A stretch of DNA of 42,744 bases, taken from assembly GCA_002269645.1 (NCBI GenBank), contig NIVC01001662.1, positions 1 to 42,744 of the forward strand. The letters are read 5' to 3'. Below the pieces are notes generated by a model. That model made no database searches. It saw only the letters and a program-made list of their open reading frames with translations, and had not been told where the DNA came from. Every line of letters starts with the position of its first letter. Within the stretch, counting starts at the first letter, position 1. Made by a program: the position numbers and the translations under genes. This stretch comes from Macrostomum lignano (Eukaryota). Of this stretch, positions 10,572-36,629 are shown one piece after another.

Positions 10572-10740
10572 ATGGGCTATCGAGAGTTCCAGGACGGCAG
10601 CGATGAGAAAAAGCTGAGCTGGCTGGGGCGGGCGCAGTACGCCTTTGACAACCTGACCGGGATGCGGAACTCCAGGAAGCTCATCCTGCTGATTGTCTTC
10701 ATAGCGCTGTTCCTGGACAACATGCTGCTGACCACAGTTG
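10572..10740 (+). CDS. VMAT: Vesicular monoamine transporter, coding exon 1 (N-terminus, TM1)
   Basis: RNSRKLILLIVFIALFLDNMLLTTV matches VMAT [25 protein letters not shown], including the TM1 Asp; donor g|gtgagt at 10741. Confidence 0.97.
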
Positions 10741-10744
10741 GTGA

Positions 10745-11296
<552 letters not shown>

Positions 11297-11799
11297 AGAT
11301 GCCTTTATCTATTTTGCTACTGCGTGCTGCAGCGAAAAGCAGACTGCAATGAATATCAGAGTAAAGTCTTAATCTAAGAGTGTTGTCCAATATGGCCCAA
11401 CAAAAAAGAACTTATAAAGAAGTCGATCGCAAAGACCCGATGCAAGCGCGCTGGACCGTGGGGCAACAGCTTCCTGCATCATTTCCTCCGGCCCGTGATT
11501 GCCCCGGGCCTGCCAGCCTCCTCCCAGGCCGGGGCGGGGGCGGCCAAGACAAGACAAGAGAAGCGAGGCAAGGAGATTTCAGAGGCGCAAAGCATTGACT
11601 AGAAATGCGTTCTTTAAATGCTCGAAAAATAGCTGTTAAAATTGGATTAAAGGTCTTAATACAAATACGAGTATCAGATATTATAAGAGCCAGAGAGATG
11701 GAGAAGGAAAGAGAGGGAGAGGAGAGCGACAAAGGATGGACCATCAATTCCATAGCACTGACTCGGTGAAGACAGCTTTTGGATATTCCTCATCAAAGC

Positions 11800-12982
11800 A
11801 GAGACAGAAGTAGAGGAGGGAGAGAGATGGGAGAAAATATAAGAAAATGGAGATAGAGATAGAGAGAGTAGAGAGAGATGGGATAAAGAGTAACAGAGAG
11901 AGAGGGACATGGAGAGAGAGAGGGGGTCAGGGAGAGAGAGGGACAGGGAGAGGGTCAGGGAGAGGGAGGGACAGGGAGAGAGAGGGACAGGGAGAGAGAG
12001 GGGTCAGGGAGAGAGAGGGACAGGGAGAGGGTCAGGGAGAGGGAGGGACAGGGAGAGAGAGGGACAGGGAGAGAGAGGGACAGAGAGAGGGCCGGGGAGA
12101 GAAAGGGACAGGGAGAGGGAGGGACAGGGAGAGGGAGGGACAGGGAGAGAGGGGACAGGGAGAGAGAGGGCCGGGGAGAGAGGGGGACAGAGAGAGGGCC
12201 GGGGAGAGAAAGGGACAGGGAGAGGGAGGGACAGGGAGAGGGAGGGACAGGGAGAGGGAGACAGGGGAGAGAGAGGGCCGGGGAGAGAGGAGGGGACAGG
12301 GGAGAGAGAGGGCCGGGGAGAGAGGGACAGGGGAGAGGGACAGGGAGAGAGAGGGCCAGGGGAGAGAGAGGAGAGAGACAGGGAGAGAGAGGGACAGGGA
12401 GAGAGAGGGTCAGGGAGAGAGAGGGACAGGGAGAGAGAGGGTCAGGGAGAGAGAGGGACAGGGAGAGAGAGGGAGAGAGAGGGTCAGGAGAGAGACAGAG
12501 AGACAGGGAGAGAGAGGAGAGAGGGGAGAGAGAGGGACAGAGAGAGAGAGAGAGGGACAGGGAGAGGGAGGGACAGGGAGAGGAGAGGGACAGGGAGAGA
12601 GGGACAGGGGAGAGAGAGGGCCGGGGAGAGAGGGGACAGGGGAGAGGGACAGGGGAGAGAGAGGGCCGGGGAGAGAGAAGGACAGGGGAGAGAGGGTCAG
12701 GGAGAGAGAGGGTCAGGGAGAGAGAGGGACAGGGAGAGAGAGGGTCAGGGAGAGAGAGGGACAGGGAGAGAGAGGGTCAGGGAGAGAGAGAGACAGGGAG
12801 AGAGAGGGTCAGGGAGAGAGAGGGACAGGGAGAGAGAGGGTCAGGGAGAGAGAGAGACAGGGAGAGAGAGGGTCAGGGAGAGAGAGAGACAGGGAGAGAG
12901 AGGGTCAGGGAGAGAGAGGGACAGGGGAGAGAGAGGGCCGGGGAGAGAGGGTCAGGGAGAGAGAGGGTCAGGGAGAGAGAGG
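11800..12982. repeat. Purine-rich 15-16 bp repeat (GGGAGAGAGAGGGACA / GGGTCA), VMAT intron 1
   Basis: G/A-dominated tandem array; source of RE/GE-rich ORFs. Confidence 0.95.
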
Positions 12983-13114
12983 AGCAAAAAAGCTGACAAG
13001 ATGGAGAAGGGGTCGAGGAAAAGAGAAGAGCGGCTATTTCGACTTTTTAAGTACATTCTGAACTTTGCGAGGTGGCGATAGGCTTATTTACCAATAAAAA
13101 CGGGCCACCCGCAG

Positions 13115-13639
13115 TGCCAATCATCCCGGACTTCCTGTGGTACATCCGGCACCGGGACTACAACTACACCGCCGAGTGCATCCAGCTGGCCAAGAACGAG
13201 ACGATCGCGGCCCGCCACTCGCACCTGTTCAACAACTCCACGGACCAGTTCGCCCAGTGGGTGGCCGAGGCGGCCAGGAAGGGCCACCAGTCTGTCGCTG
13301 GCGAGTTCGGCAGCGGCGGTGGCGGCCGCGGGCCCGGGGAAGGCGGCGGCTTTCACCGGTTTTACGGCCGCATGCCGGTGCTGCACGCGGACAGGTACTT
13401 CGTTGAGCACGTGAAGTACATTCGGCTCAACGACTCCAAGATCCACGACTGCTTCGTTGAGGCGGACAACTGGCGGCACGAGCAGCTGGTGGAGATGAAC
13501 ATCCACGTTGGGTTGATGTTCGCGGCCAAGTCTGTCATGCAGCTCATGGTGAATCCGTTTGTGGGGCCGCTCACTAACCGCATCGGCTACTCAATTCCCA
13601 TGTTCTCCGGATTCGTCATCATGTTCATCTCCACTATCA
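13115..13639 (+). CDS. VMAT: VMAT exon 2 (end of TM1, large luminal loop, TM2, TM3)
   Basis: cccgcag acceptor; VPIIPDFL...[43 protein letters not shown]; sequons NYT, NET, NNS/NST, NDS; donor a|gtgagc. Confidence 0.97.
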
Positions 13640-13720
13640 GTGAGCATGGCGGGGTCCTTGGGGTTGCAAATCGCTCAGAGTGCACAGCAGCACCGCAGCC
13701 ACCCTCGCCTCTGCTTTCAG

Positions 13721-13804
13721 TTTTCGCATTCGGCGAGTCCTATGGTGTCCTGTTCGTTGCCCGGGCCATTCAGGGCATCGGGTCCGCCTGTTCCAGCGTT
13801 TCAG
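13721..13804 (+). CDS. VMAT: VMAT exon 3 (TM4)
   Basis: ctgctttcag acceptor; [28 protein letters not shown]; donor g|gtgagg. Confidence 0.97.
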
Positions 13805-13984
13805 GTGAGGGCGTCATTTGTCTAGGAAACCCAACTATTATACCTGTAAGCCTCACTGTCGATGGTATTTGAGAAGCTTTGCCAAAATACGAGGATTTAA
13901 ATGTCCCCTAAGCCAATTGAAAGGCATCAGAATCTGCAGTTTATTATCTTACAAAAAGACTCATTGTCAAGCTAATAACAACCC

Positions 13985-14530
13985 ACCCACCTCATCCCAG
14001 CCACCCACCTCCCTCCAGCCACCCACTTCACTCCAGTCCCCTATCTCACTCCAACTACCTCTCACTCCAGCCACCCACCTCACTCCAACCACCCACCTCA
14101 CCCCAGCCCCCCCACCTCACTCCAGCCACCTACCTCACCCCAGCCCCCCACCTCACTCCAGTCCTCCATCTCACTCCAACCACCCCCTCACTCCAGCTAC
14201 CCACCTCACTCCAGTCCTCCATCTCACTCCAACCACCCCCTCACTCCAGCTACCCACCTCACTCCAGTCACTTACCTCACTACCGTCACCCATCTCACTC
14301 CAGTCATCCACCTCACTACCGTCACCCACCTCACCCAGTCCCCCATCTCACTCCACCCCACCTCACTTCAGCCCCGACACCTCACTCCAGCCCCCCACAT
14401 CACTCCAGTCCTCCATCTCACTCTCGTCACCCACCTCAATACCGTCACGCACCTCAATACCGTCACCCACCTCACTCCACCCCCACCTCATTCCAGCCCC
14501 CACCTCACTCCAGTCACCCACCCACCCCAC
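13985..14530. repeat. C-rich degenerate about 18-bp repeat (CCACCCACCTCACTCCAG), VMAT intron 3
   Basis: Recurrent CACCTCACTCC core. Confidence 0.9.
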
Positions 14531-14578
14531 TCCGCTCCGTCAGTATTAATGCTATTAATGATCTGTTGAACCCGCAAG

Positions 14579-14671
14579 GCATGGGCATGGTGGCAGCCAT
14601 CTACACGGAGGACGGGGAGCGAGGCCGCGCCCTCGGCATCGCGCTGAGCGGCTTGGCATTCGGAGTCATGG
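14579..14671 (+). CDS. VMAT: VMAT alternative exon 4A (93 nt, phase 1-1)
   Basis: cccgcaag acceptor, g|gtgcat donor; GMGMVAAIYTEDGERGRALGIALSGLAFGVM aligns without gaps to human VMAT2 G203-L233; not in the ORF track. Confidence 0.88.
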
Positions 14672-14942
14672 GTGCATTGAATGCTGGGACAGAATCCCGC
14701 CTTCCTCCAAAATCTTCTGTTTAAAGCACAAGAGTCTTACATTTTTATTTCGTTTCAGTTTCAAAGCACTTAAAGCATTTTATCTGCTGGATTGAACTTG
14801 ATTTTCAGCATTATTCTTCAATTTGCCCTTGAACCTCGATTTTAGTAGGCAACTGTCTTTTTCGTTTTTATTTATTTGCTCTGACCGTCGTTAAAAAAAC
14901 TCAAGAGGCTTTTTCCTGACACGACCATCAAACCCTCACCAG

Positions 14943-15035
14943 GACTGGGCATGCTGGCCACTCAGTACCCGGACGACAAGGAGAGGGGCCAGGCCATGAG
15001 CCTGGCTCTGGGCGGGCTCGCCATGGGAGTGCTGG
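14943..15035 (+). CDS. VMAT: VMAT alternative exon 4B (93 nt, phase 1-1)
   Basis: ccctcaccag acceptor, g|gtgaga donor; [31 protein letters not shown] aligns without gaps to the same segment. Confidence 0.93.
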
Positions 15036-15042
15036 GTGAGAT

Positions 15043-15402
<360 letters not shown>

Positions 15403-15762
15403 GCAGCGCATTTATCTGACTACTCGTGCTGACTCTAGCATATAGAGCTGCCAATTTCGCACTAACTGCAAGCGCACCCCTTGAGCGGCAGAGATTCGCT
15501 CCAAGCCCTGTCTATGCGTTTGATAATTTCCAGTAGCAAGAGCATCAATAATGTAAAGCAAATTTCGACCAATTTTCGAGGCTTAAATTCGGCTTCAATA
15601 ACATTTTCTTACTAAAAACAAGCGCTAGTCATATTTAGTTTTTCTATAGACGCCATTAGATTCGCTGTTGTGTCTCTGAGCTCTCAGAATTTGCATTGGA
15701 CTGCCGCTGCCAGCCAGCATCCCCAACCACTCAAACCTCCGCCCTCCGCCCCGCTCCGCCAG

Positions 15763-15852
15763 TCGGGCCTCCATTCGGCGGCCTGATGTACCAGTTCGTC
15801 AGCAAGGAGGCCGCCTTCCTGCTGCTGGCCGGCCTCGCTCTGCTGGACGGCG
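15763..15852 (+). CDS. VMAT: VMAT exon 5 (TM5 end, TM6)
   Basis: ccgccag acceptor; [30 protein letters not shown]; donor g|gtgagt. Confidence 0.96.
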
Positions 15853-15962
15853 GTGAGTCATGCGCAGATTGCACTACTGACTAGCCGGACTGTTAGTAGG
15901 GCGATGCAGATTTTATAGGAAGCAACTTAACCATTTCAACACCCTTTTTTGAACTTTCGTAG

Positions 15963-16239
15963 TGCTGCAACTGCTGGTGCTGAAGCCCGGAGTCCGGCGC
16001 GAGGCGCAAGAAGGCGCCCCGCTGAAAAACTTGCTGCGCGACCCCTACATCCTGCTGGCCGCCGGCAGCATCACCTTCGGCAACATGGGCATCGCCATGC
16101 TGGAGCCGTCATTGCCTATCTGGATGAAGGACACCATGCGGGCGCAGAAGTGGGAGCAGGGGGTCGCCTTCTTGCCGTGCTCCATCTCCTACCTGATCGG
16201 CACCAACCTGTTTGGCGCGCTCGCCTTCCGGATTGGCAG
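15963..16239 (+). CDS. VMAT: VMAT exon 6 (TM7, TM8)
   Basis: tttcgtag acceptor; [32 protein letters not shown]...[19 protein letters not shown]; donor ag|gtgagg. Confidence 0.97.
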
Positions 16240-16385
16240 GTGAGGGCGCGACTCTTTCTCGGGCCAATGCAATCGAGTTCGACTTGGAGCTTGTAGACGA
16301 AAACAGCGGAATGGGCAGGACTACTTGCGTCCTCGCGGCCCTAACTATGGAACCAACTGGGGTTGAAGCTGCATGAAATATGTCC

Positions 16386-16600
16386 GCACCTCACTCCGCA
16401 CAGCCACCTCACTCCGCACAGCCACCTCACTCCGCACAGCCACCTCACTCCGCACAGCCACCTCACTCCGCACAGCCACCTCACTCCGCACAGCCACCTC
16501 ACTCCGCACAGCCACCTCACTCCGCACAGCCACCCCACTCCGCACAGCCACCTCACTCCGCACAGCCACCTCACTCCGCACAGCCACCTCACTCCGCCCA
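16386..16600. repeat. 18-bp minisatellite (CACCTCACTCCGCACAGC), about 12 copies
   Basis: Near-perfect array; shares CACCTCACTCC core with 13985-14530. Confidence 0.97.
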
Positions 16601-16623
16601 GCCTGATCCAACCTCTATTTCAG

Positions 16624-16675
16624 ATGGCTGAGCGCCGGTCTCGGCATGGTCATCATGGGCGTCTGCTTAATAATT
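16624..16675 (+). CDS. VMAT: VMAT exon 7 (TM9)
   Basis: ctatttcag acceptor; RWLSAGLGMVIMGVCLII; donor gtgagt; phase 2 to 0 fits neighbours. Confidence 0.95.
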
Positions 16676-16792
16676 GTGAGTGCATTGAATTCCTTTTACG
16701 AGCGTAGGTAGCCAAAAATACGCTCGTAATGTTGTTTTTTGCGAATTTGGCCAGCATTTTGAGCATACTAATCCATTATTGTCACTGCCCAG

Positions 16793-16976
16793 ATCCCGTT
16801 CGCTAATTCCTTGGGCCACTTGGTGGTGCCAAACTTCGGCCTGGGCTTCGCCATCGGCATGGTGGACTCCTCAATGATGCCGCTCATGGGCTACCTGGTC
16901 GACCTGCGCCACGTCTCCGTCTATGGCAGCGTCTACGCGATCGCCGACATCGCCTTCTGCCTCGGCTTTGCGGTCG
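16793..16976 (+). CDS. VMAT: VMAT exon 8 (TM10, TM11)
   Basis: [44 protein letters not shown] nearly identical to VMATs, with both conserved Asp. Confidence 0.98.
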
Positions 16977-17224
16977 GTGCGTACGGAGCGGAGAGAACGG
17001 GAGGGCGCGAGAACTCTGGTGTTTGCGCAAGAGGGGTGAAGGAGCATCGGATTGGGGTGGATGCAAGGACTCCTGGACTACTAGTGGTCCTTGGGGCGGT
17101 GGTGGAGTGAGGTGATGGGTGGAGAAGTGTAGTTGATGGAGCAAGTAATTGAGGGAAAGACTCATCTGATGGTAGTTCTGTGCCGTACAAAAGCCTTGAA
17201 ACCGCGTCTTAAACGAATCACCAG

Positions 17225-17358
17225 GCCCGGCTCTGAGCGGCAGCATCGTCAAGATGATGGGGTTCCGCTGGATGATGTGGTCCATCGCCATCATCGCATT
17301 CATCTACGCCCCGCTGCACTACTTCCTCAGGGACCCGCCGGCACGCATGGAGGATCGC
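17225..17358 (+). CDS. VMAT: VMAT exon 9 (TM12)
   Basis: atcaccag acceptor; GPALSGSIVKMMGFRWMMWSIAIIAFIYAPLHYFLRDPPARMEDR; donor gtaaga. Confidence 0.96.
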
Positions 17359-17449
17359 GTAAGACAATTTTAAAACGCCTTTCATCAGCGGCACATCGTG
17401 ACAAAATTAGGGATTTACAGTAGGGATTTTCCCTCCGACATGGACTTTC

Positions 17450-18255
17450 GCTGGGGTGGTTCTCCCCAATGTACACAGCCGGCAGGGCTGGGGTGGTTCT
17501 CCCCAATGTACACAGGCAGCAGGGCTGGGGTGGGGTGGTTCTCCCCAATGTACACAGCCAGCAGGGCTGGGGTGGTTCTCCCCAAAGTACACAGCTAGCA
17601 GGGCTGGGGTGGTTCTCCCCAATGTACACAGCCAAGTACACAGGCACTGCAGGGCTGGGGTGGTTCTCCCCAATGTACACAGCCGGCAGGGCTGGGGTGG
17701 TTCTCCCCAATGTACGCAAGTACACAGCAGGGCTGGGGTGGTTCTCCCCAATGTACGCAGCCGGCAGGGCTGGGGTGGTTCTCCCCAATGTACACAGCCG
17801 GCAGGGCTGGGGTGGTTCTCCCCAATGTACACAGCCGGCAGGGCTGGGGTGGTTCTCCCCAATGTACACAGCCGGCAGGGTGGGGTGGTTCTCCCCAATG
17901 TACACAGCCGGCAGGGCTGGGGTGGTTCTCCCCAATGTACACAGCCGGCAGGGCTGGGGTGGTTCTCCCCAATGTACGCAGCCAGCAGGGCTGGGGTGGT
18001 TCTCCCCTATCTACACAGCCGGCAGGGCTGGGGTGGTTCTCCCCAATGTACACAGCCGGCAGGGCTGGGGTGGTTCTCCCCAATGTACACAGGCAGCAGG
18101 GCTGGGGTGGGGTGGTTCTCCCCAATGTACACAGCCGGCAGGGCTGGGGTGGTTCTCCCCAATGTACACAGGCAGCAGGGCTGGGGTGGTTGTCCCCAAT
18201 GTACACAGGCAGCAGGGCTGGAGTGGGGTGGTTCTCCCCTATGTACACAGCCAGC
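17450..18255. repeat. 37-bp minisatellite (GGGCTGGGGTGGTTCTCCCCAATGTACACAGCCGGCA), about 20 copies
   Basis: Fills most of the last VMAT intron and ends about 10 nt before the acceptor. Confidence 0.97.
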
Positions 18256-18267
18256 AAAAACCCGCAG

Positions 18268-18477
18268 GGCCTGGTGATGGGGGGCCAGAAGCCCGCCCAG
18301 TACCAGACGCACAACATCGACAACAAGGTGCCGCCGCCGGTGCCGCCGCCGCCGGTGCTGTCCGGCGGAAACGCTTTCTCCGCCGAGGCGGACCAGCAGT
18401 TCCCAGTGGAGTGGGAGAAATGCGAACCCGGCCCCGTGCCCGCCACTGGCAGCACTCAATTTCCGCAGTACAGGTGA
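18268..18477 (+). CDS. VMAT: VMAT terminal exon (cytoplasmic Pro-rich tail)
   Basis: cccgcag acceptor, phase 0; GLVMGGQKPAQYQ...VPPPVPPPPVL...FPQYR*; exon sum with one exon 4 is 1818 nt (605 aa + stop). Confidence 0.85.
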   Translation, partial: GLVMGGQKPAQYQTHNIDNKVPPPVPPPPVLSGGNAFSAEADQQFPVEWEKCEPGPVPATGSTQFPQYR

Positions 18478-21676: not shown

Positions 21677-21849
21677 CTGAAAGCGGCAGGCAGGGTGGAG
21701 ACGGGTTGTGAAGAAGTTCTCCATCTGCTCTCCTATGACTTTCAGTCATTTCCCACCGCATTTTGTGAGCAATCGAGAGCGCTTGAGAAATTCGGTCAGC
21801 AGCAGGAATGGAAACTGCCATCTTTTTGGTTTGGAACTTTTTACCTATT

Positions 21850-22710
21850 GCTCTCCATCATCGAATCCGCTCTCTCCATCATCGAATCCGCTCTCTCCAT
21901 CATCGAATCCGCTCTCTACATCATCGAATCCGCTCTCTCCATCATCGAACCCGCTCTCTCCATCATCGAATCCGCTCTCTCCATCATCGAATCCGCTCTC
22001 TCCATCATCGAATCCGCTCTCTCCATCATCGAATCCACTCTCTCCTTCATCGAATCCACTCTCTCCTACATCGAATCCGCTCTCTCCATCATCGAATCCG
22101 CTCTCTCCATCATCGAATCCGCTCTCTCCATCATCGAATCCGCTCTCTCCATCATCGAATCCGCTCTCTCCATCATCGAATCCGCTCTCTCCATAATCTA
22201 ATCCGCTCTCTCCATCATCGAATCCGCTCCCTCCATCATCGAATCCGCTCTCTCCATCATCGAATCCACTCTCTCCTTCATCGAATCCACTCTCTCCTTC
22301 ATCGAATCCGCTCTCTCCATCATCGAATCCGCTCCCTCCATCATCGAATCCGCTCTCTCCATCATCGAATCCGCTCTCTCCATCATCGAATCCACTCTCT
22401 CCTTCATCGAATCCGCTCTCTCCATCATCGAATCCGCTCTCTCCATCATCGAATCCGCTCTCTCCTCCCTTACCCGCTCTGTCCTACCTTATCCACTCTC
22501 TCCTCACTTATCCGCTCTCTTATTCACTCTCTCCCCTTATCCGCTCTCTCCTCCCTTATCCGCTCTCTCCTCACTTATCCGCTCTCCTCCCTTATCCGCT
22601 CTTTCCTCTCTTATCCGCTCTCTCCTCACTTATCCGCTCTCCTCCCTTATCCGCTCTTTCCTCTCTTATCCGCTCTCTGCTCTTTTATGCGCTCTCTCCT
22701 CTCTTATCTC
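21850..22710. repeat. 21-bp (CCATCATCGAATCCGCTCTCT) array grading into a 19-bp (CCTCCCTTATCCGCTCTCT) array
   Basis: Two adjoining arrays share the ATCCGCTCT core; switch near 22465. Confidence 0.95.
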
Positions 22711-22741
22711 TCTTTTAACTCCACCCAAACTTCTTACTCAC

Positions 22742-22889
22742 CCTCAAAGTTGATCCGGCCATCGTTGTCAGCATCGGCCTCGTTAATCATGGACTGGACG
22801 TCCTCGTCCGAGACCTCTTCGCCTAGGAAGTGCATAGTCTTCTTGATCTCGGCAAAGTCTATGTAGTTGTCGCCGTTATGGTCGAAGGC
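22742..22889 (-). CDS. Calmodulin-like protein, EF3 and EF4 exon
   Basis: cccgcag acceptor; AFDHNGDNYIDFAEIKKTMHFLGEEVSDEDVQSMINEADADNDGRINFE; donor g|gtgagt. Missed by the ORF track. Confidence 0.95.
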
Positions 22890-33630: not shown

Positions 33631-34754
33631 GGTACACACTTTAACTATTACATAGATGGAGTGAAGAAGCTGGAAAGAGACTTGAATAGGGGACAGAAAG
33701 TGCTCAAAAAGAGCTCATTAGATACGGCCATGACAATCCTAAACCAGGAGACATGCTCGAACACGTGTTGCAGCCCCGGCTTAGTCAGGATGAAGGCAAG
33801 AGCAACTCCGGATACGGGGGAAATACAATAGTTCTGAGATGCCGGCAGAATGAGTGCAGCAGCAAGGCGGAGAGGCAGACTGAAATATTGGTGGGGCTGA
33901 ACCCCCCCCCCTCGCCTCCCGCTGCACTGCCAAGTCATTAGTTGCTCAGAAGCGGGCGGGTGCAGGGGGGGGGGGCAAAAGTCAAAAAGAAGATGCCTCA
34001 TTAGTGAAAACCGAATGACAGAATCTAGAAGGCGATATTAATTGGAGACCCAGGGAGAGAGCCGCTCCCAGCAACCCCAGACACAGCACACACACAGCAC
34101 ACACACACAGCTGTCAATTACTGAGACTGAACGCGCAGATCAATACAAAACACACTGCAGCCGTCACAGCTGGGCGTCAGCAGCAGACCAAATAGCAGCA
34201 CTTATTCGCTGGGGGCTGAGGGGTTGAAAACAGGCAACAGCCAACAATCGGAGCTCAGCTTAGCTGCCGATCCAGGGGCTTGAATAACCGATTGAAATAT
34301 ACAACTATGCATTTTATCGATTTAGTCCGGGCTCAAAACCACTCAAACAGGCACCTTGCTTTGCGCCCTCCAGCCCCGTCTCCCGCTTGGCCTCCCGCAC
34401 TCCCGCGTCACTGATTCAGTTTGATTAGAAATGAGCCCGGCAATTGCGGCCAGCAGTAGGTGAAGCAGTATAAGCGGCAGCGACTGCAGCTTATTATATA
34501 TATGGCTATTTTTAAACCGCCTTGGCTCAGCGATCAGTTTGGCTTCCAGCAAAAGAAAAATAATAGGAAGGTACTGTATGCAATACCGCGTCTGCACTGC
34601 AGTGCAACCGGATTGAACCGGAAGAGCCAAGCAAGGAGAACTAGAAAGAAATCTATATAAAATCTGGAGAGCAGAAACTCCTTTTCCAACCCTGGACATT
34701 TATTGTTTTTGAGCCACTATTTCAAAAGTTCTAGCAACGCCTAACGGTATTTTG

Positions 34755-35412
34755 ATTTTCGGGTTTGTGGTATTTCCGGTTTGTGATATTTCCGGTTTGT
34801 GATATTTCGGGTTTGTGGTATTTCGGGTTTGTGATATTTCGGGTTTGTGGTATTTCGGGTTTGTGATATTTCGGGTTTGTGATATTTCGGGTTTGTGGTA
34901 TTTCGGGTTTGTGATATTTCCGGTTTGTGATATTTCGGGTTTGTGATATTTCGGGTTTGTGATATTTCGGGTTTGTGATATTTCGGGTTTGTGATATTTC
35001 GGGTTTGTGGTATTTCGGGTTTGTGATATTTCGGGTTTGTGGTATTTCGGGTTTGTGGTATTTCGGGTTTGTGATATTTCGGGTTTGTGATATTTTGGGC
35101 TTGTGATATTTCGGGTTTGTGTTATTTCGGGCTTGTGATATTTCGGGTTTGTGATATTTCGGGTTTGTGATATTTCGGGCTTGTGATATTTCGGTTTTGT
35201 GGTATTTCCGGTTTGTGGTATTTCCGGTTTGTGGTATTTCCGGTTTGTGGTATTTCGGGTTTGTGATATTTCGGGTTTGTGATATTTCGGGTTTGTGATA
35301 TTTCGGGCTTGTGATATTTCGGGTTTGTGATATTTCGGGTTTGTGATATTTCGGGCTTGTGATATTTCGGTTTTGTGGTATTTCCGGTTTGTGGTATTTC
35401 CGGTTTGTGGCA
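34755..35412. repeat. 16-bp minisatellite (GATATTTCGGGTTTGT), about 40 copies
   Basis: Tandem array; source of KYHKPEI ORFs. Confidence 0.97.
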
Positions 35413-35650
35413 TTTCCAGTTTGCAATGGATGTTGCTATTTTGATTTTTTTGAGTTATGATATTTCAGATTTGTGATTTTTTGAGTTTTTAATGGCGACC
35501 CCCAGCTGGGCTATTCTACTAAATTATTTTCTTATTGTTGAAATTGTTGATTATTAGCGTTTAGAGAGTCCAAAAAAGGCTTACTAAACAAATGTTAAAG
35601 CACTAGAACAAGAGCAGAGCATAGCAACTTTTTTCTAAGTGCTCTAAATA

Positions 35651-36629
35651 TAGGTTTTTCGTTTGATTTCATAAAATTGTCATTTGATTTCGTCCATAGA
35701 AGTTGGCAGCGCGGCCATAGAGTCTATAGCAATAAAGTGCACTGTTTTCCGATTGAATTCGTAACTTTGCCACTTCATTTCGACTTGGCGCGCGGAGTGG
35801 CTCAAACACTGCCAGAGGGGGCTGGGATATCAGTGGGTGAATATCTATGGCCAAACCTCTCATAGAAATGAAAAGCCTATATGAACGTGTCCTCTTCTTG
35901 GGCAACAGTCACCTTCCTTGTATGCCTAAAAATGGCTGCATACGCGTCCATTGGAAACGACAGAAGGCATCTTGTCATTGAAGCAATGAACAGGGGTGAG
36001 AAAGTGACGGAAATAGCGCGATGGCTCAACATCAACAAACAGACAGTGTACTCCATAGTGAAGTGTACTCCATTTCTTAACGCCGCGAAGCAGGCACACA
36101 GTTGTCTCAAGGCTTCGCTTAAACGCCAGCTAGCAACACCTGAGCTTCAACAGGAACTTAGCTATCCGCCTGATGGCATCAACCTAACGCAGTGGAGACT
36201 CATGGTGCTTTTCCGCTGCGGCTACGTTGCACTAGAGGAAATTTCCGCCGCGAAGTGCCTTGCCTGGGAACGACATGTGATGCGGTTTCTGCCCCTGTGC
36301 ATCAATGAGCAGCAGATAATGTGAAATTTGTAGCTTGTTGCAGCGAACGAGCATTAACTTTGGCGGACATAACTGATTTCACTGTTGAACTGCCTACTTC
36401 CTCATGTGACTTAAATACACAGCTTTCTGTTTTTAACAGTTCTTTCTGTACTGGACAAGTGCATTGACTTTTCTGTTGTCTTTCTACTGGGTATGACGAA
36501 ATGAAGTGGCAAAGTTATGAATTCAATCGGAAAACAGCGCACTTTATTGCCATAGACTCTATGGCCGCGCTGCCAACTTCTATGGACGAAATCAAATGGC
36601 TATTTTAAGAAATCAAACGAAAAATCCTA
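35651..36629 (+). mobile_element. Non-autonomous Tc1/mariner-type DNA transposon (979 bp)
   Basis: About 133-bp terminal inverted repeats (35651-35782 and 36497-36629, about 7 differences by eye), TA on both flanks, internal HTH ORF. Confidence 0.9.
35932..36324 (+). CDS. Truncated transposase: N-terminal helix-turn-helix, catalytic core absent (130 aa)
   Basis: DRRHLVIEAMNRGEKVTEIARWLNINKQTVYSIVK has the Tc1-type HTH pattern; no DDE/D triad region. Confidence 0.65.
   Translation: MAAYASIGNDRRHLVIEAMNRGEKVTEIARWLNINKQTVYSIVKCTPFLNAAKQAHSCLKASLKRQLATPELQQELSYPPDGINLTQWRLMVLFRCGYVALEEISAAKCLAWERHVMRFLPLCINEQQIM

Follow-up and report, generated by a model that had tools for sequence, protein, structure and literature searches.

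A putative mutually exclusive exon pair in the VMAT gene of the flatworm Macrostomum lignano

The VMAT (SLC18A1/2-type) gene of the free-living flatworm Macrostomum lignano raises the question whether a single gene can supply two versions of a vesicular amine transporter by choosing between two neighbouring copies of one exon, of which only the second is annotated. In this study, we analysed the whole of contig NIVC01001662.1 of assembly GCA_002269645.1 (42,744 nt, hereafter the window). The exon map was built by tblastn with human VMAT2 and by placing the splice sites by hand, and every exon border is AG/GT. The gene and the surroundings of the exon pair, here called 4A and 4B, are laid out as follows.

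10572-18477, plus strand: VMAT gene, from ATG to stop, 10 coding exons
10572-10740, 13115-13639 and 13721-13804, plus strand: coding exons 1, 2 and 3
13721-13804, plus strand: exon 3, constant, upstream of the pair, TM4; ends ...ACSSVS plus the first base of Gly203
13983-14533, plus strand: minisatellite in intron 3, 18-nt unit CCACCCACCTCACTCCAG, about 30 copies, ending 45 nt before the 4A acceptor
14579-14671, plus strand: exon 4A, unannotated, 93 nt, phase 1 to 1, corresponding to residues 203-234 of human VMAT2
14672-14942, plus strand: intron between 4A and 4B, 271 nt
14943-15035, plus strand: exon 4B, annotated default, 93 nt, same phase as 4A, acceptor cag/G, donor G/gtgaga
15039-15401, plus strand: (GATA)n microsatellite of about 91 units, beginning 4 nt past the 4B donor
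15763-15852, plus strand: exon 5, constant, downstream of the pair; starts V234-GPPFGG
15763-15852, 15963-16239, 16624-16675, 16793-16976, 17225-17358 and 18268-18477, plus strand: the coding exons after 4A/4B

With 4B, the spliced product matches the deposited M. lignano protein PAA57588.1 (P0001, 605 aa) at every residue; this protein has the MFS fold, with Pfam MFS_1 on record, and its best 120 matches listed are synaptic vesicular amine transporters. Its closest solved structures are human VMAT2 (E = 5e-168), then VMAT1, and then VAChT (E about 1e-100). The amine/proton-site residues D33, K138, R189, E312, D399 and D426 (human numbering) are present and VMAT-like in the constant exons, and the gate partners encoded by constant exons (R357, M403, D411, Y418 and Y422) are conserved. 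Outside the exon pair, the predicted gene is an unambiguous VMAT. The equivalent of human VMAT2 Y433 is Phe in M. lignano (exon 8, 16793-16976), and Y433A in human VMAT2 abolishes dihydrotetrabenazine binding (PMC10959523), thus tetrabenazine sensitivity may differ whichever exon is chosen. Three near-identical copies of the complete VMAT locus are present in the assembly (this contig, NIVC01002469.1 and NIVC01002640.1), with introns about 99% identical, in agreement with a passage of PMC10468722 that describes M. lignano as a hidden polyploid. Both exons are present and identical in all three genomic copies, and an assembly artefact was rejected, the same arrangement being found in three separate contigs. 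Elsewhere in the window lie an open reading frame for a coiled-coil-like protein of 352 aa (21808-22866, plus strand), one of 147 aa, perhaps left over from a transposase, with a homeodomain-like HTH_23 domain (35881-36324, plus strand), and a weak match, below threshold, to the C-terminal end of D-glucuronyl C5-epimerase (34700-35413, minus strand).

The introns of the gene are rich in tandem repeats. A (GTCT)138 tract begins 5 nt past the exon 1 donor (10745-11296), intron 1 also holds a 16-nt GA-rich repeat (11896-12982), and most of the last intron is a 37-nt minisatellite (17450-18256). The 18-nt unit CCACCCACCTCACTCCAG next to 4A is a pyrimidine-rich run ending in CAG, resembling a 3' splice site, and a related 18-nt repeat occurs in the intron after exon 6 (16387-16603). 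The intron between 4B and exon 5, which holds the (GATA)n tract, accounts for most indels among the three gene copies, with 24-112 gapped alignment columns per pair.

Exon 4A is bordered by AG at 14577-78 (acceptor aag/G) and GT at 14672-73 (donor G/gtgcat). Its first two bases finish a Gly codon and its last base opens the next one, in keeping with phase 1, and the product reads (G)MGMVAAIYTEDGERGRALGIALSGLAFGVM. Both the coordinates of 4A and the VMAT2 numbering proposed by the sequence-only reading proved exact: the exon is open between AG and GT, and both exons align without gaps to human VMAT2 residues 204-233 (PDB 8wlj_A, native numbering), with tblastn E values of 4e-9 and 8e-9 for the two exon copies. 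The six differences that it had listed between 4A and 4B were all recovered (204 M/L, 221 L/M, 222 G/S, 226 S/G, 230 F/M and 233 M/L), and the two exons differ beyond these at 207, 209, 210, 212, 213, 215, 219 and 223, that is, at 14 of 30 residues. All 16 residues common to both exons, including D214, E216, R217, G227, L228, G231 and V232, are kept in 4A, and the TM4-TM5 loop beside the conserved D214 reads AIYTEDG in 4A versus TQYPDDK in 4B.

To these exons we applied the criteria for predicting mutually exclusive exons of Pillmann et al. / Kassiopeia (PMC3923563). 4A and 4B lie side by side on one strand of one gene, flanked by constant exons 3 and 5; each is 93 nt long; both run from phase 1 to phase 1 between AG and GT; and they are homologous, sharing 61 of 93 nt (66%) and 16 of 30 aa (53%), with a similarity far beyond chance (Smith-Waterman z = 15.4 versus shuffles). 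On all four sequence criteria 4A and 4B are a genuine tandem-duplicated pair, and 4A looks like a candidate mutually exclusive alternative exon. The predicted junction 40-mers are as follows.

Exon 3 to 4A: CGCCTGTTCCAGCGTTTCAG joined to GCATGGGCATGGTGGCAGCC
4A to exon 5: CTTGGCATTCGGAGTCATGG joined to TCGGGCCTCCATTCGGCGGC
Exon 3 to 4B: CGCCTGTTCCAGCGTTTCAG joined to GACTGGGCATGCTGGCCACT
4B to exon 5: GCTCGCCATGGGAGTGCTGG joined to TCGGGCCTCCATTCGGCGGC
4A to 4B: CTTGGCATTCGGAGTCATGG joined to GACTGGGCATGCTGGCCACT
Exon 3 to exon 5: CGCCTGTTCCAGCGTTTCAG joined to TCGGGCCTCCATTCGGCGGC

How old is the pair, and how widely is it shared? In two trematodes (Fasciola gigantica and Schistosoma curassoni), an annelid (Capitella teleta) and a mollusc (Lottia gigantea) the homologous exon, again 93 nt long, occurs once only, and since it is single-copy in these four other lophotrochozoans, the duplication probably arose on the branch leading to Macrostomum. 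No isoforms differing in this exon were found in ten multi-isoform clusters of annotated orthologues, which span brachiopod, stomatopod, chiton, beetle, cricket, bees, oysters, mussels, abalone and snails. Likewise, no close relative of 4A was present among about 320 extracted segments, the best being an ordinary VMAT segment identical at 21 of 30 positions. 4A and 4B are each nearer to the general VMAT consensus than to each other; the pattern fits an old duplication followed by independent divergence, during which 4A would have changed about twice as much as 4B. We propose that an old, self-contained VMAT exon of 93 nt, encoding the end of TM4, a short cytosolic loop and most of TM5, was duplicated in tandem to give 4A and 4B.

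Among the four public M. lignano protein models, three carry 4B and one skips both exons, and a full-length search of the public M. lignano protein models found 4A in none of them. A noisy, transcript-like M. lignano-like protein (P0128), recovered by exhaustive search of representatives, contains 4B and retained introns. Two models (P0122 and P0123) retain the 81-nt intron between exons 2 and 3 (13640-13720), which is open and in frame and adds 27 residues within a transmembrane region. Searches with a 76-aa query (matches of up to 109 aa) and with a 182-aa two-isoform profile (up to 319 aa) returned no M. lignano fragments with either 4A or 4B; the known PAA57588.1, despite long exact matches to both queries, was likewise unreturned, so that these negatives carry little weight. 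When metagenomes were scanned with peptides of exons 3-6, among them MVAAIYTE, which is specific to 4A, the matches were relatives of 39-43% identity only. The splice sites of 4A are the weakest of the gene, with the sole AAG acceptor and the sole donor without G at +5. We take 4B to be the default exon: its splice sites are strong, it lies nearest to the other VMATs, and every gene model that carries an exon of the pair contains it.

What could keep the two exons apart in the mRNA? No feature of the sequence imposes exclusion. The 271-nt intron between them is too long for steric exclusion, and both splice-site pairs are of the major type. Every inclusion pattern (4A, 4B, both or neither) stays in frame, and since double inclusion and double skipping keep the frame, nonsense-mediated decay cannot enforce exclusion. 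A search for competing RNA structure (docking/selector pairs) around the exons yielded only two inverted repeats, which is the level of chance. Mutual exclusion, if it occurs, would be enforced by trans-acting splicing regulation or by selection against mis-spliced products.

The sequence-only reading had also described 4A as VAChT-like, quoting a human VAChT string, ERSRALGVALAFISFG, that matches the chains of PDB 9kkn/8zmr exactly. We compared both exons with position profiles built from 79 distinct VMAT segments and 18 VAChT-type segments. The VMAT-versus-VAChT log-odds were +28.5 bits for 4A and +63.7 bits for 4B, against +39 (minimum 39.3) to +84 for VMAT orthologues and -47 to -72 for VAChTs, and bootstrap assignment placed 4A with VMAT in 865, with a third SLC18 group in 119 and with VAChT in 16 of 1000 replicates. 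Its mean identity was 18.6/30 to VMATs versus 12.9/30 to the 18 VAChT segments. By these profiles 4A is VMAT-type, although its score falls beyond the VMAT range in the direction of VAChT. L221 and F230 account for most of this shift, with smaller contributions from G215, E213, V207 and R219. The 4A-type residues are not common in ordinary VMATs at the two main positions: L221 is found in 0 of 79 VMAT segments but in 12 of 18 VAChT segments, F230 in 0 of 79 but in 17 of 18, so there the likeness to VAChT stands. However, it does not extend to the exon as a whole, as the log-odds and bootstraps indicate, and R219 and S226 of 4A are ordinary VMAT states, S226 being typical of flatworms. The signature of the 18 VAChT representatives, L-A-M-I-A-D ... 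E-R-[ST]-x-A-[LQ]-G-I-A-L-A-F-I-S-F-G, is matched by 4A only at L221 and F230 plus the common hexamer ALGIAL; unlike VAChT (SLC18A3), 4A is without LAMIAD, S/T218 and A226-F227-I228-S229. Position 221 varies (M, F, L, I) across flatworm and other SLC18 members, and L or I at 221 and F at 230 occur occasionally in other non-VAChT SLC18 representatives. Exon 4B for its part bears the VAChT-typical L204 (3 of 79 VMAT, 15 of 18 VAChT segments).

The structural consequences of the swap can be read against human VMAT2, whose inner cytosolic gate layer consists of M204, M221, M403 and Y422 and whose outer layer consists of D214-R357 and R217-D411, with L228 and V232 as residues of the tetrabenazine/serotonin pocket (PMC11695631, PMC10959523). 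The earlier assignment of M204, R217 and M221 to the cytosolic gate agrees with these papers. At the inner gate the two exons are reciprocal, with M204/L221 in 4A versus L204/M221 in 4B, and so is the small-residue pattern on the packing face of TM5 (G222/S226 in 4A versus S222/G226 in 4B). Identical in both exons are D214, R217, L225, L228 and V232, which include the outer gate and the ligand contacts. Within TM5 the changed positions are 219, 222, 223, 226, 230 and 233. On a helical wheel these lie at 140-240 degrees, opposite to R217, M221, L225, L228 and V232, which lie at 0-80 degrees on the reported gate/pocket face; by this wheel the six changed positions would face away from the transport path. 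Residues 222, 223, 226, 229, 230 and 233 go unmentioned in both VMAT2 structure papers (PMC11695631, PMC10959523), and a literature search turned up no open paper on VAChT structure with a mention of TM5. The sequence-only reading had placed the TM5 positions around 225-232 along the substrate and inhibitor cavity; the changed residues that it listed are confirmed, but 222, 226, 230 and 233 lie off the cavity-facing side by this wheel, and the pocket residues L228 and V232 are the same in both exons. Because the gate and pocket residues D214, R217, L228 and V232 are shared, an altered gate or altered helix packing is likelier than a new substrate, and a tuning of substrate range by the splice choice, as once suggested, becomes the least likely of the proposed effects. 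Taken with the published structures, the swap would affect gating or conformational equilibrium and not substrate class.

The best overall explanation, to which we give a probability of roughly 0.6, is that 4A and 4B are tandem duplicates and that 4A is a regulated alternative to the default 4B, most likely replacing it in some cells or conditions. The competing view is that 4A is a relic, duplicated and perhaps once used, but now never or almost never spliced in and slowly decaying, so that only the 4B isoform is made. The absence of 4A from annotated models and its weak splice sites speak for a relic, although weak splice sites are also usual in regulated alternative exons. 4A is also the most divergent VMAT-type segment of the panel, its VMAT-profile score of 67.3 bits being lower than that of any of the 79 VMAT orthologues (minimum 71.0), which also fits relaxed constraint, and it has taken 7-11 replacements versus 3-7 for 4B. 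On the other hand, no similarity was detectable between the introns flanking 4A and those flanking 4B (z about 0 for stretches of 60-270 nt on each side, and for the 20-60 nt beside the splice sites as well), and the similarity between the exons begins and ends exactly at the splice sites. If drift has scrambled the neutral parts of the duplicated unit, an unconstrained 4A should be scrambled as well, but its frame, exact length and AG/GT borders are intact and every residue conserved across the family is kept. When drift was simulated from 4B with at least 16 substitutions, an open frame together with the VMAT profile score of 4A was kept in at most 0.3% of runs. Replacements assigned by parsimony to the 4A lineage were more conservative than random under three splits (P = 0.027, 0.062 and 0.003, the last counting all 14); in the profile test, the most conservative split, with 7 replacements on the 4A lineage, was non-significant (P = 0.19). 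Second codon positions hold only 3 of 31 in-frame nucleotide differences, and dN/dS between 4A and 4B is about 0.5, a noisy and method-dependent estimate from 30 codons. Selection on 4A is unreadable from the three genome copies because their introns, too, are about 99% identical. We regard the relic as unlikely, if far from negligible, and we think it probable that 4A is, or until recently was, a used alternative exon.

Two further possibilities would accept 4A as an exon but read it differently. The exons might not be mutually exclusive, with 4A acting as a cassette alongside 4B or with both being skippable; 93 nt is a multiple of three, the intron between them is long enough to permit 4A-4B splicing, and P0123 joins exon 3 straight to exon 5. 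However, P0123 looks like an automatic prediction and not a cDNA because it retains an intron, and double inclusion would add a second loop and TM5 just as double skipping would remove TM5, either of which, judging from MFS architecture, would invert the membrane orientation of the C-terminal half of the 12-helix protein. This arrangement seems very improbable. We give equally little credit to the view that 4A is used and shifts the transporter towards VAChT (acetylcholine or other non-monoamine cations) or otherwise alters its substrate range. L221, F230 and the log-odds below the VMAT minimum point that way, but 4A is VMAT-type by profile and bootstrap and is without the VAChT motifs, position 221 is already variable in the family, and the VAChT-typical L204 sits in 4B; moreover, the TM5 pocket residues are unchanged, F230 lies about 180 degrees from the pocket face, and the amine/proton residues reside, VMAT-like, in constant exons. 

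Under the regulated-alternative explanation, one gene would yield a second VMAT isoform through 4A, and the isoforms may differ in gate stability, conformational equilibrium or helix packing, hence in turnover rate, proton coupling and perhaps sensitivity to reserpine-type inhibitors, with the bound substrate class the same. That 4A is cell-type-specific, giving two VMATs that differ in inner-gate chemistry and TM5 packing and hence in kinetics or inhibitor sensitivity, is a doubtful extension that we offer only tentatively.

Mutually exclusive exon pairs arising by tandem exon duplication have been described genome-wide (PMC9741552, PMC8373072, PMC5740500), with ion channels and other membrane proteins reportedly overrepresented and most events being ancient in a human survey. 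The text of that survey names no SLC18 genes. Pairs of this kind in membrane transport proteins include CACNA1C exons 8/8a and SLC25A3 exons 3A/3B. The M. lignano pair resembles them in consisting of adjacent homologous exons of equal length and phase that encode a transmembrane helix, so that the isoforms would differ in one homologous segment; unlike the surveyed pairs, it is predicted from sequence, and its duplication is seen only in M. lignano. Tandem-duplicated mutually exclusive exons are thus a known class, of which the VMAT pair would be a new putative case. A literature search on mutually exclusive exons in VMAT genes gave no report, the one match concerning a tick cholinergic gene locus, and a search on VMAT in Macrostomum gave nothing.

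Vertebrate VMAT1 and VMAT2 (SLC18A1/SLC18A2) are likewise two versions of a transporter that differ, among other places, in TM5, where V232 of VMAT2 versus L232 of VMAT1 contributes to tetrabenazine selectivity (PMC10959523). Unlike these, both M. lignano exons keep V232 and L228; what sets them apart is inner-gate residues 204/221, the loop and positions on the back of TM5, the rest of the protein being common to both. Diversification would come by way of one exon in M. lignano and by way of a whole gene in vertebrates. Invertebrate VMAT isoforms made by alternative splicing are found in Drosophila as well, where VMAT-A and VMAT-B are thought to be used in different cell types. There the difference lies in a cytoplasmic C-terminal tail with trafficking signals and, unlike in the M. 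lignano pair, not in a transmembrane helix or gate.

If 4A is unused, it would be an ordinary decaying exon duplicate, and the practical upshot would be only a caution for annotation. If it is used, a VMAT isoform is missing from current M. lignano annotations, and the gene would offer a natural gate-variant pair, with reciprocal Met/Leu at 204 and 221 in an otherwise identical protein, suited to testing how the inner gate and TM5 packing set transport rate and sensitivity to reserpine and tetrabenazine. The pair would then be, as far as the literature searched shows, the first described mutually exclusive exon pair in the SLC18 family. It would mean that vesicular amine transporters can diversify by exon duplication besides gene duplication, and would stand as an exon-level counterpart of the vertebrate VMAT1/VMAT2 split.
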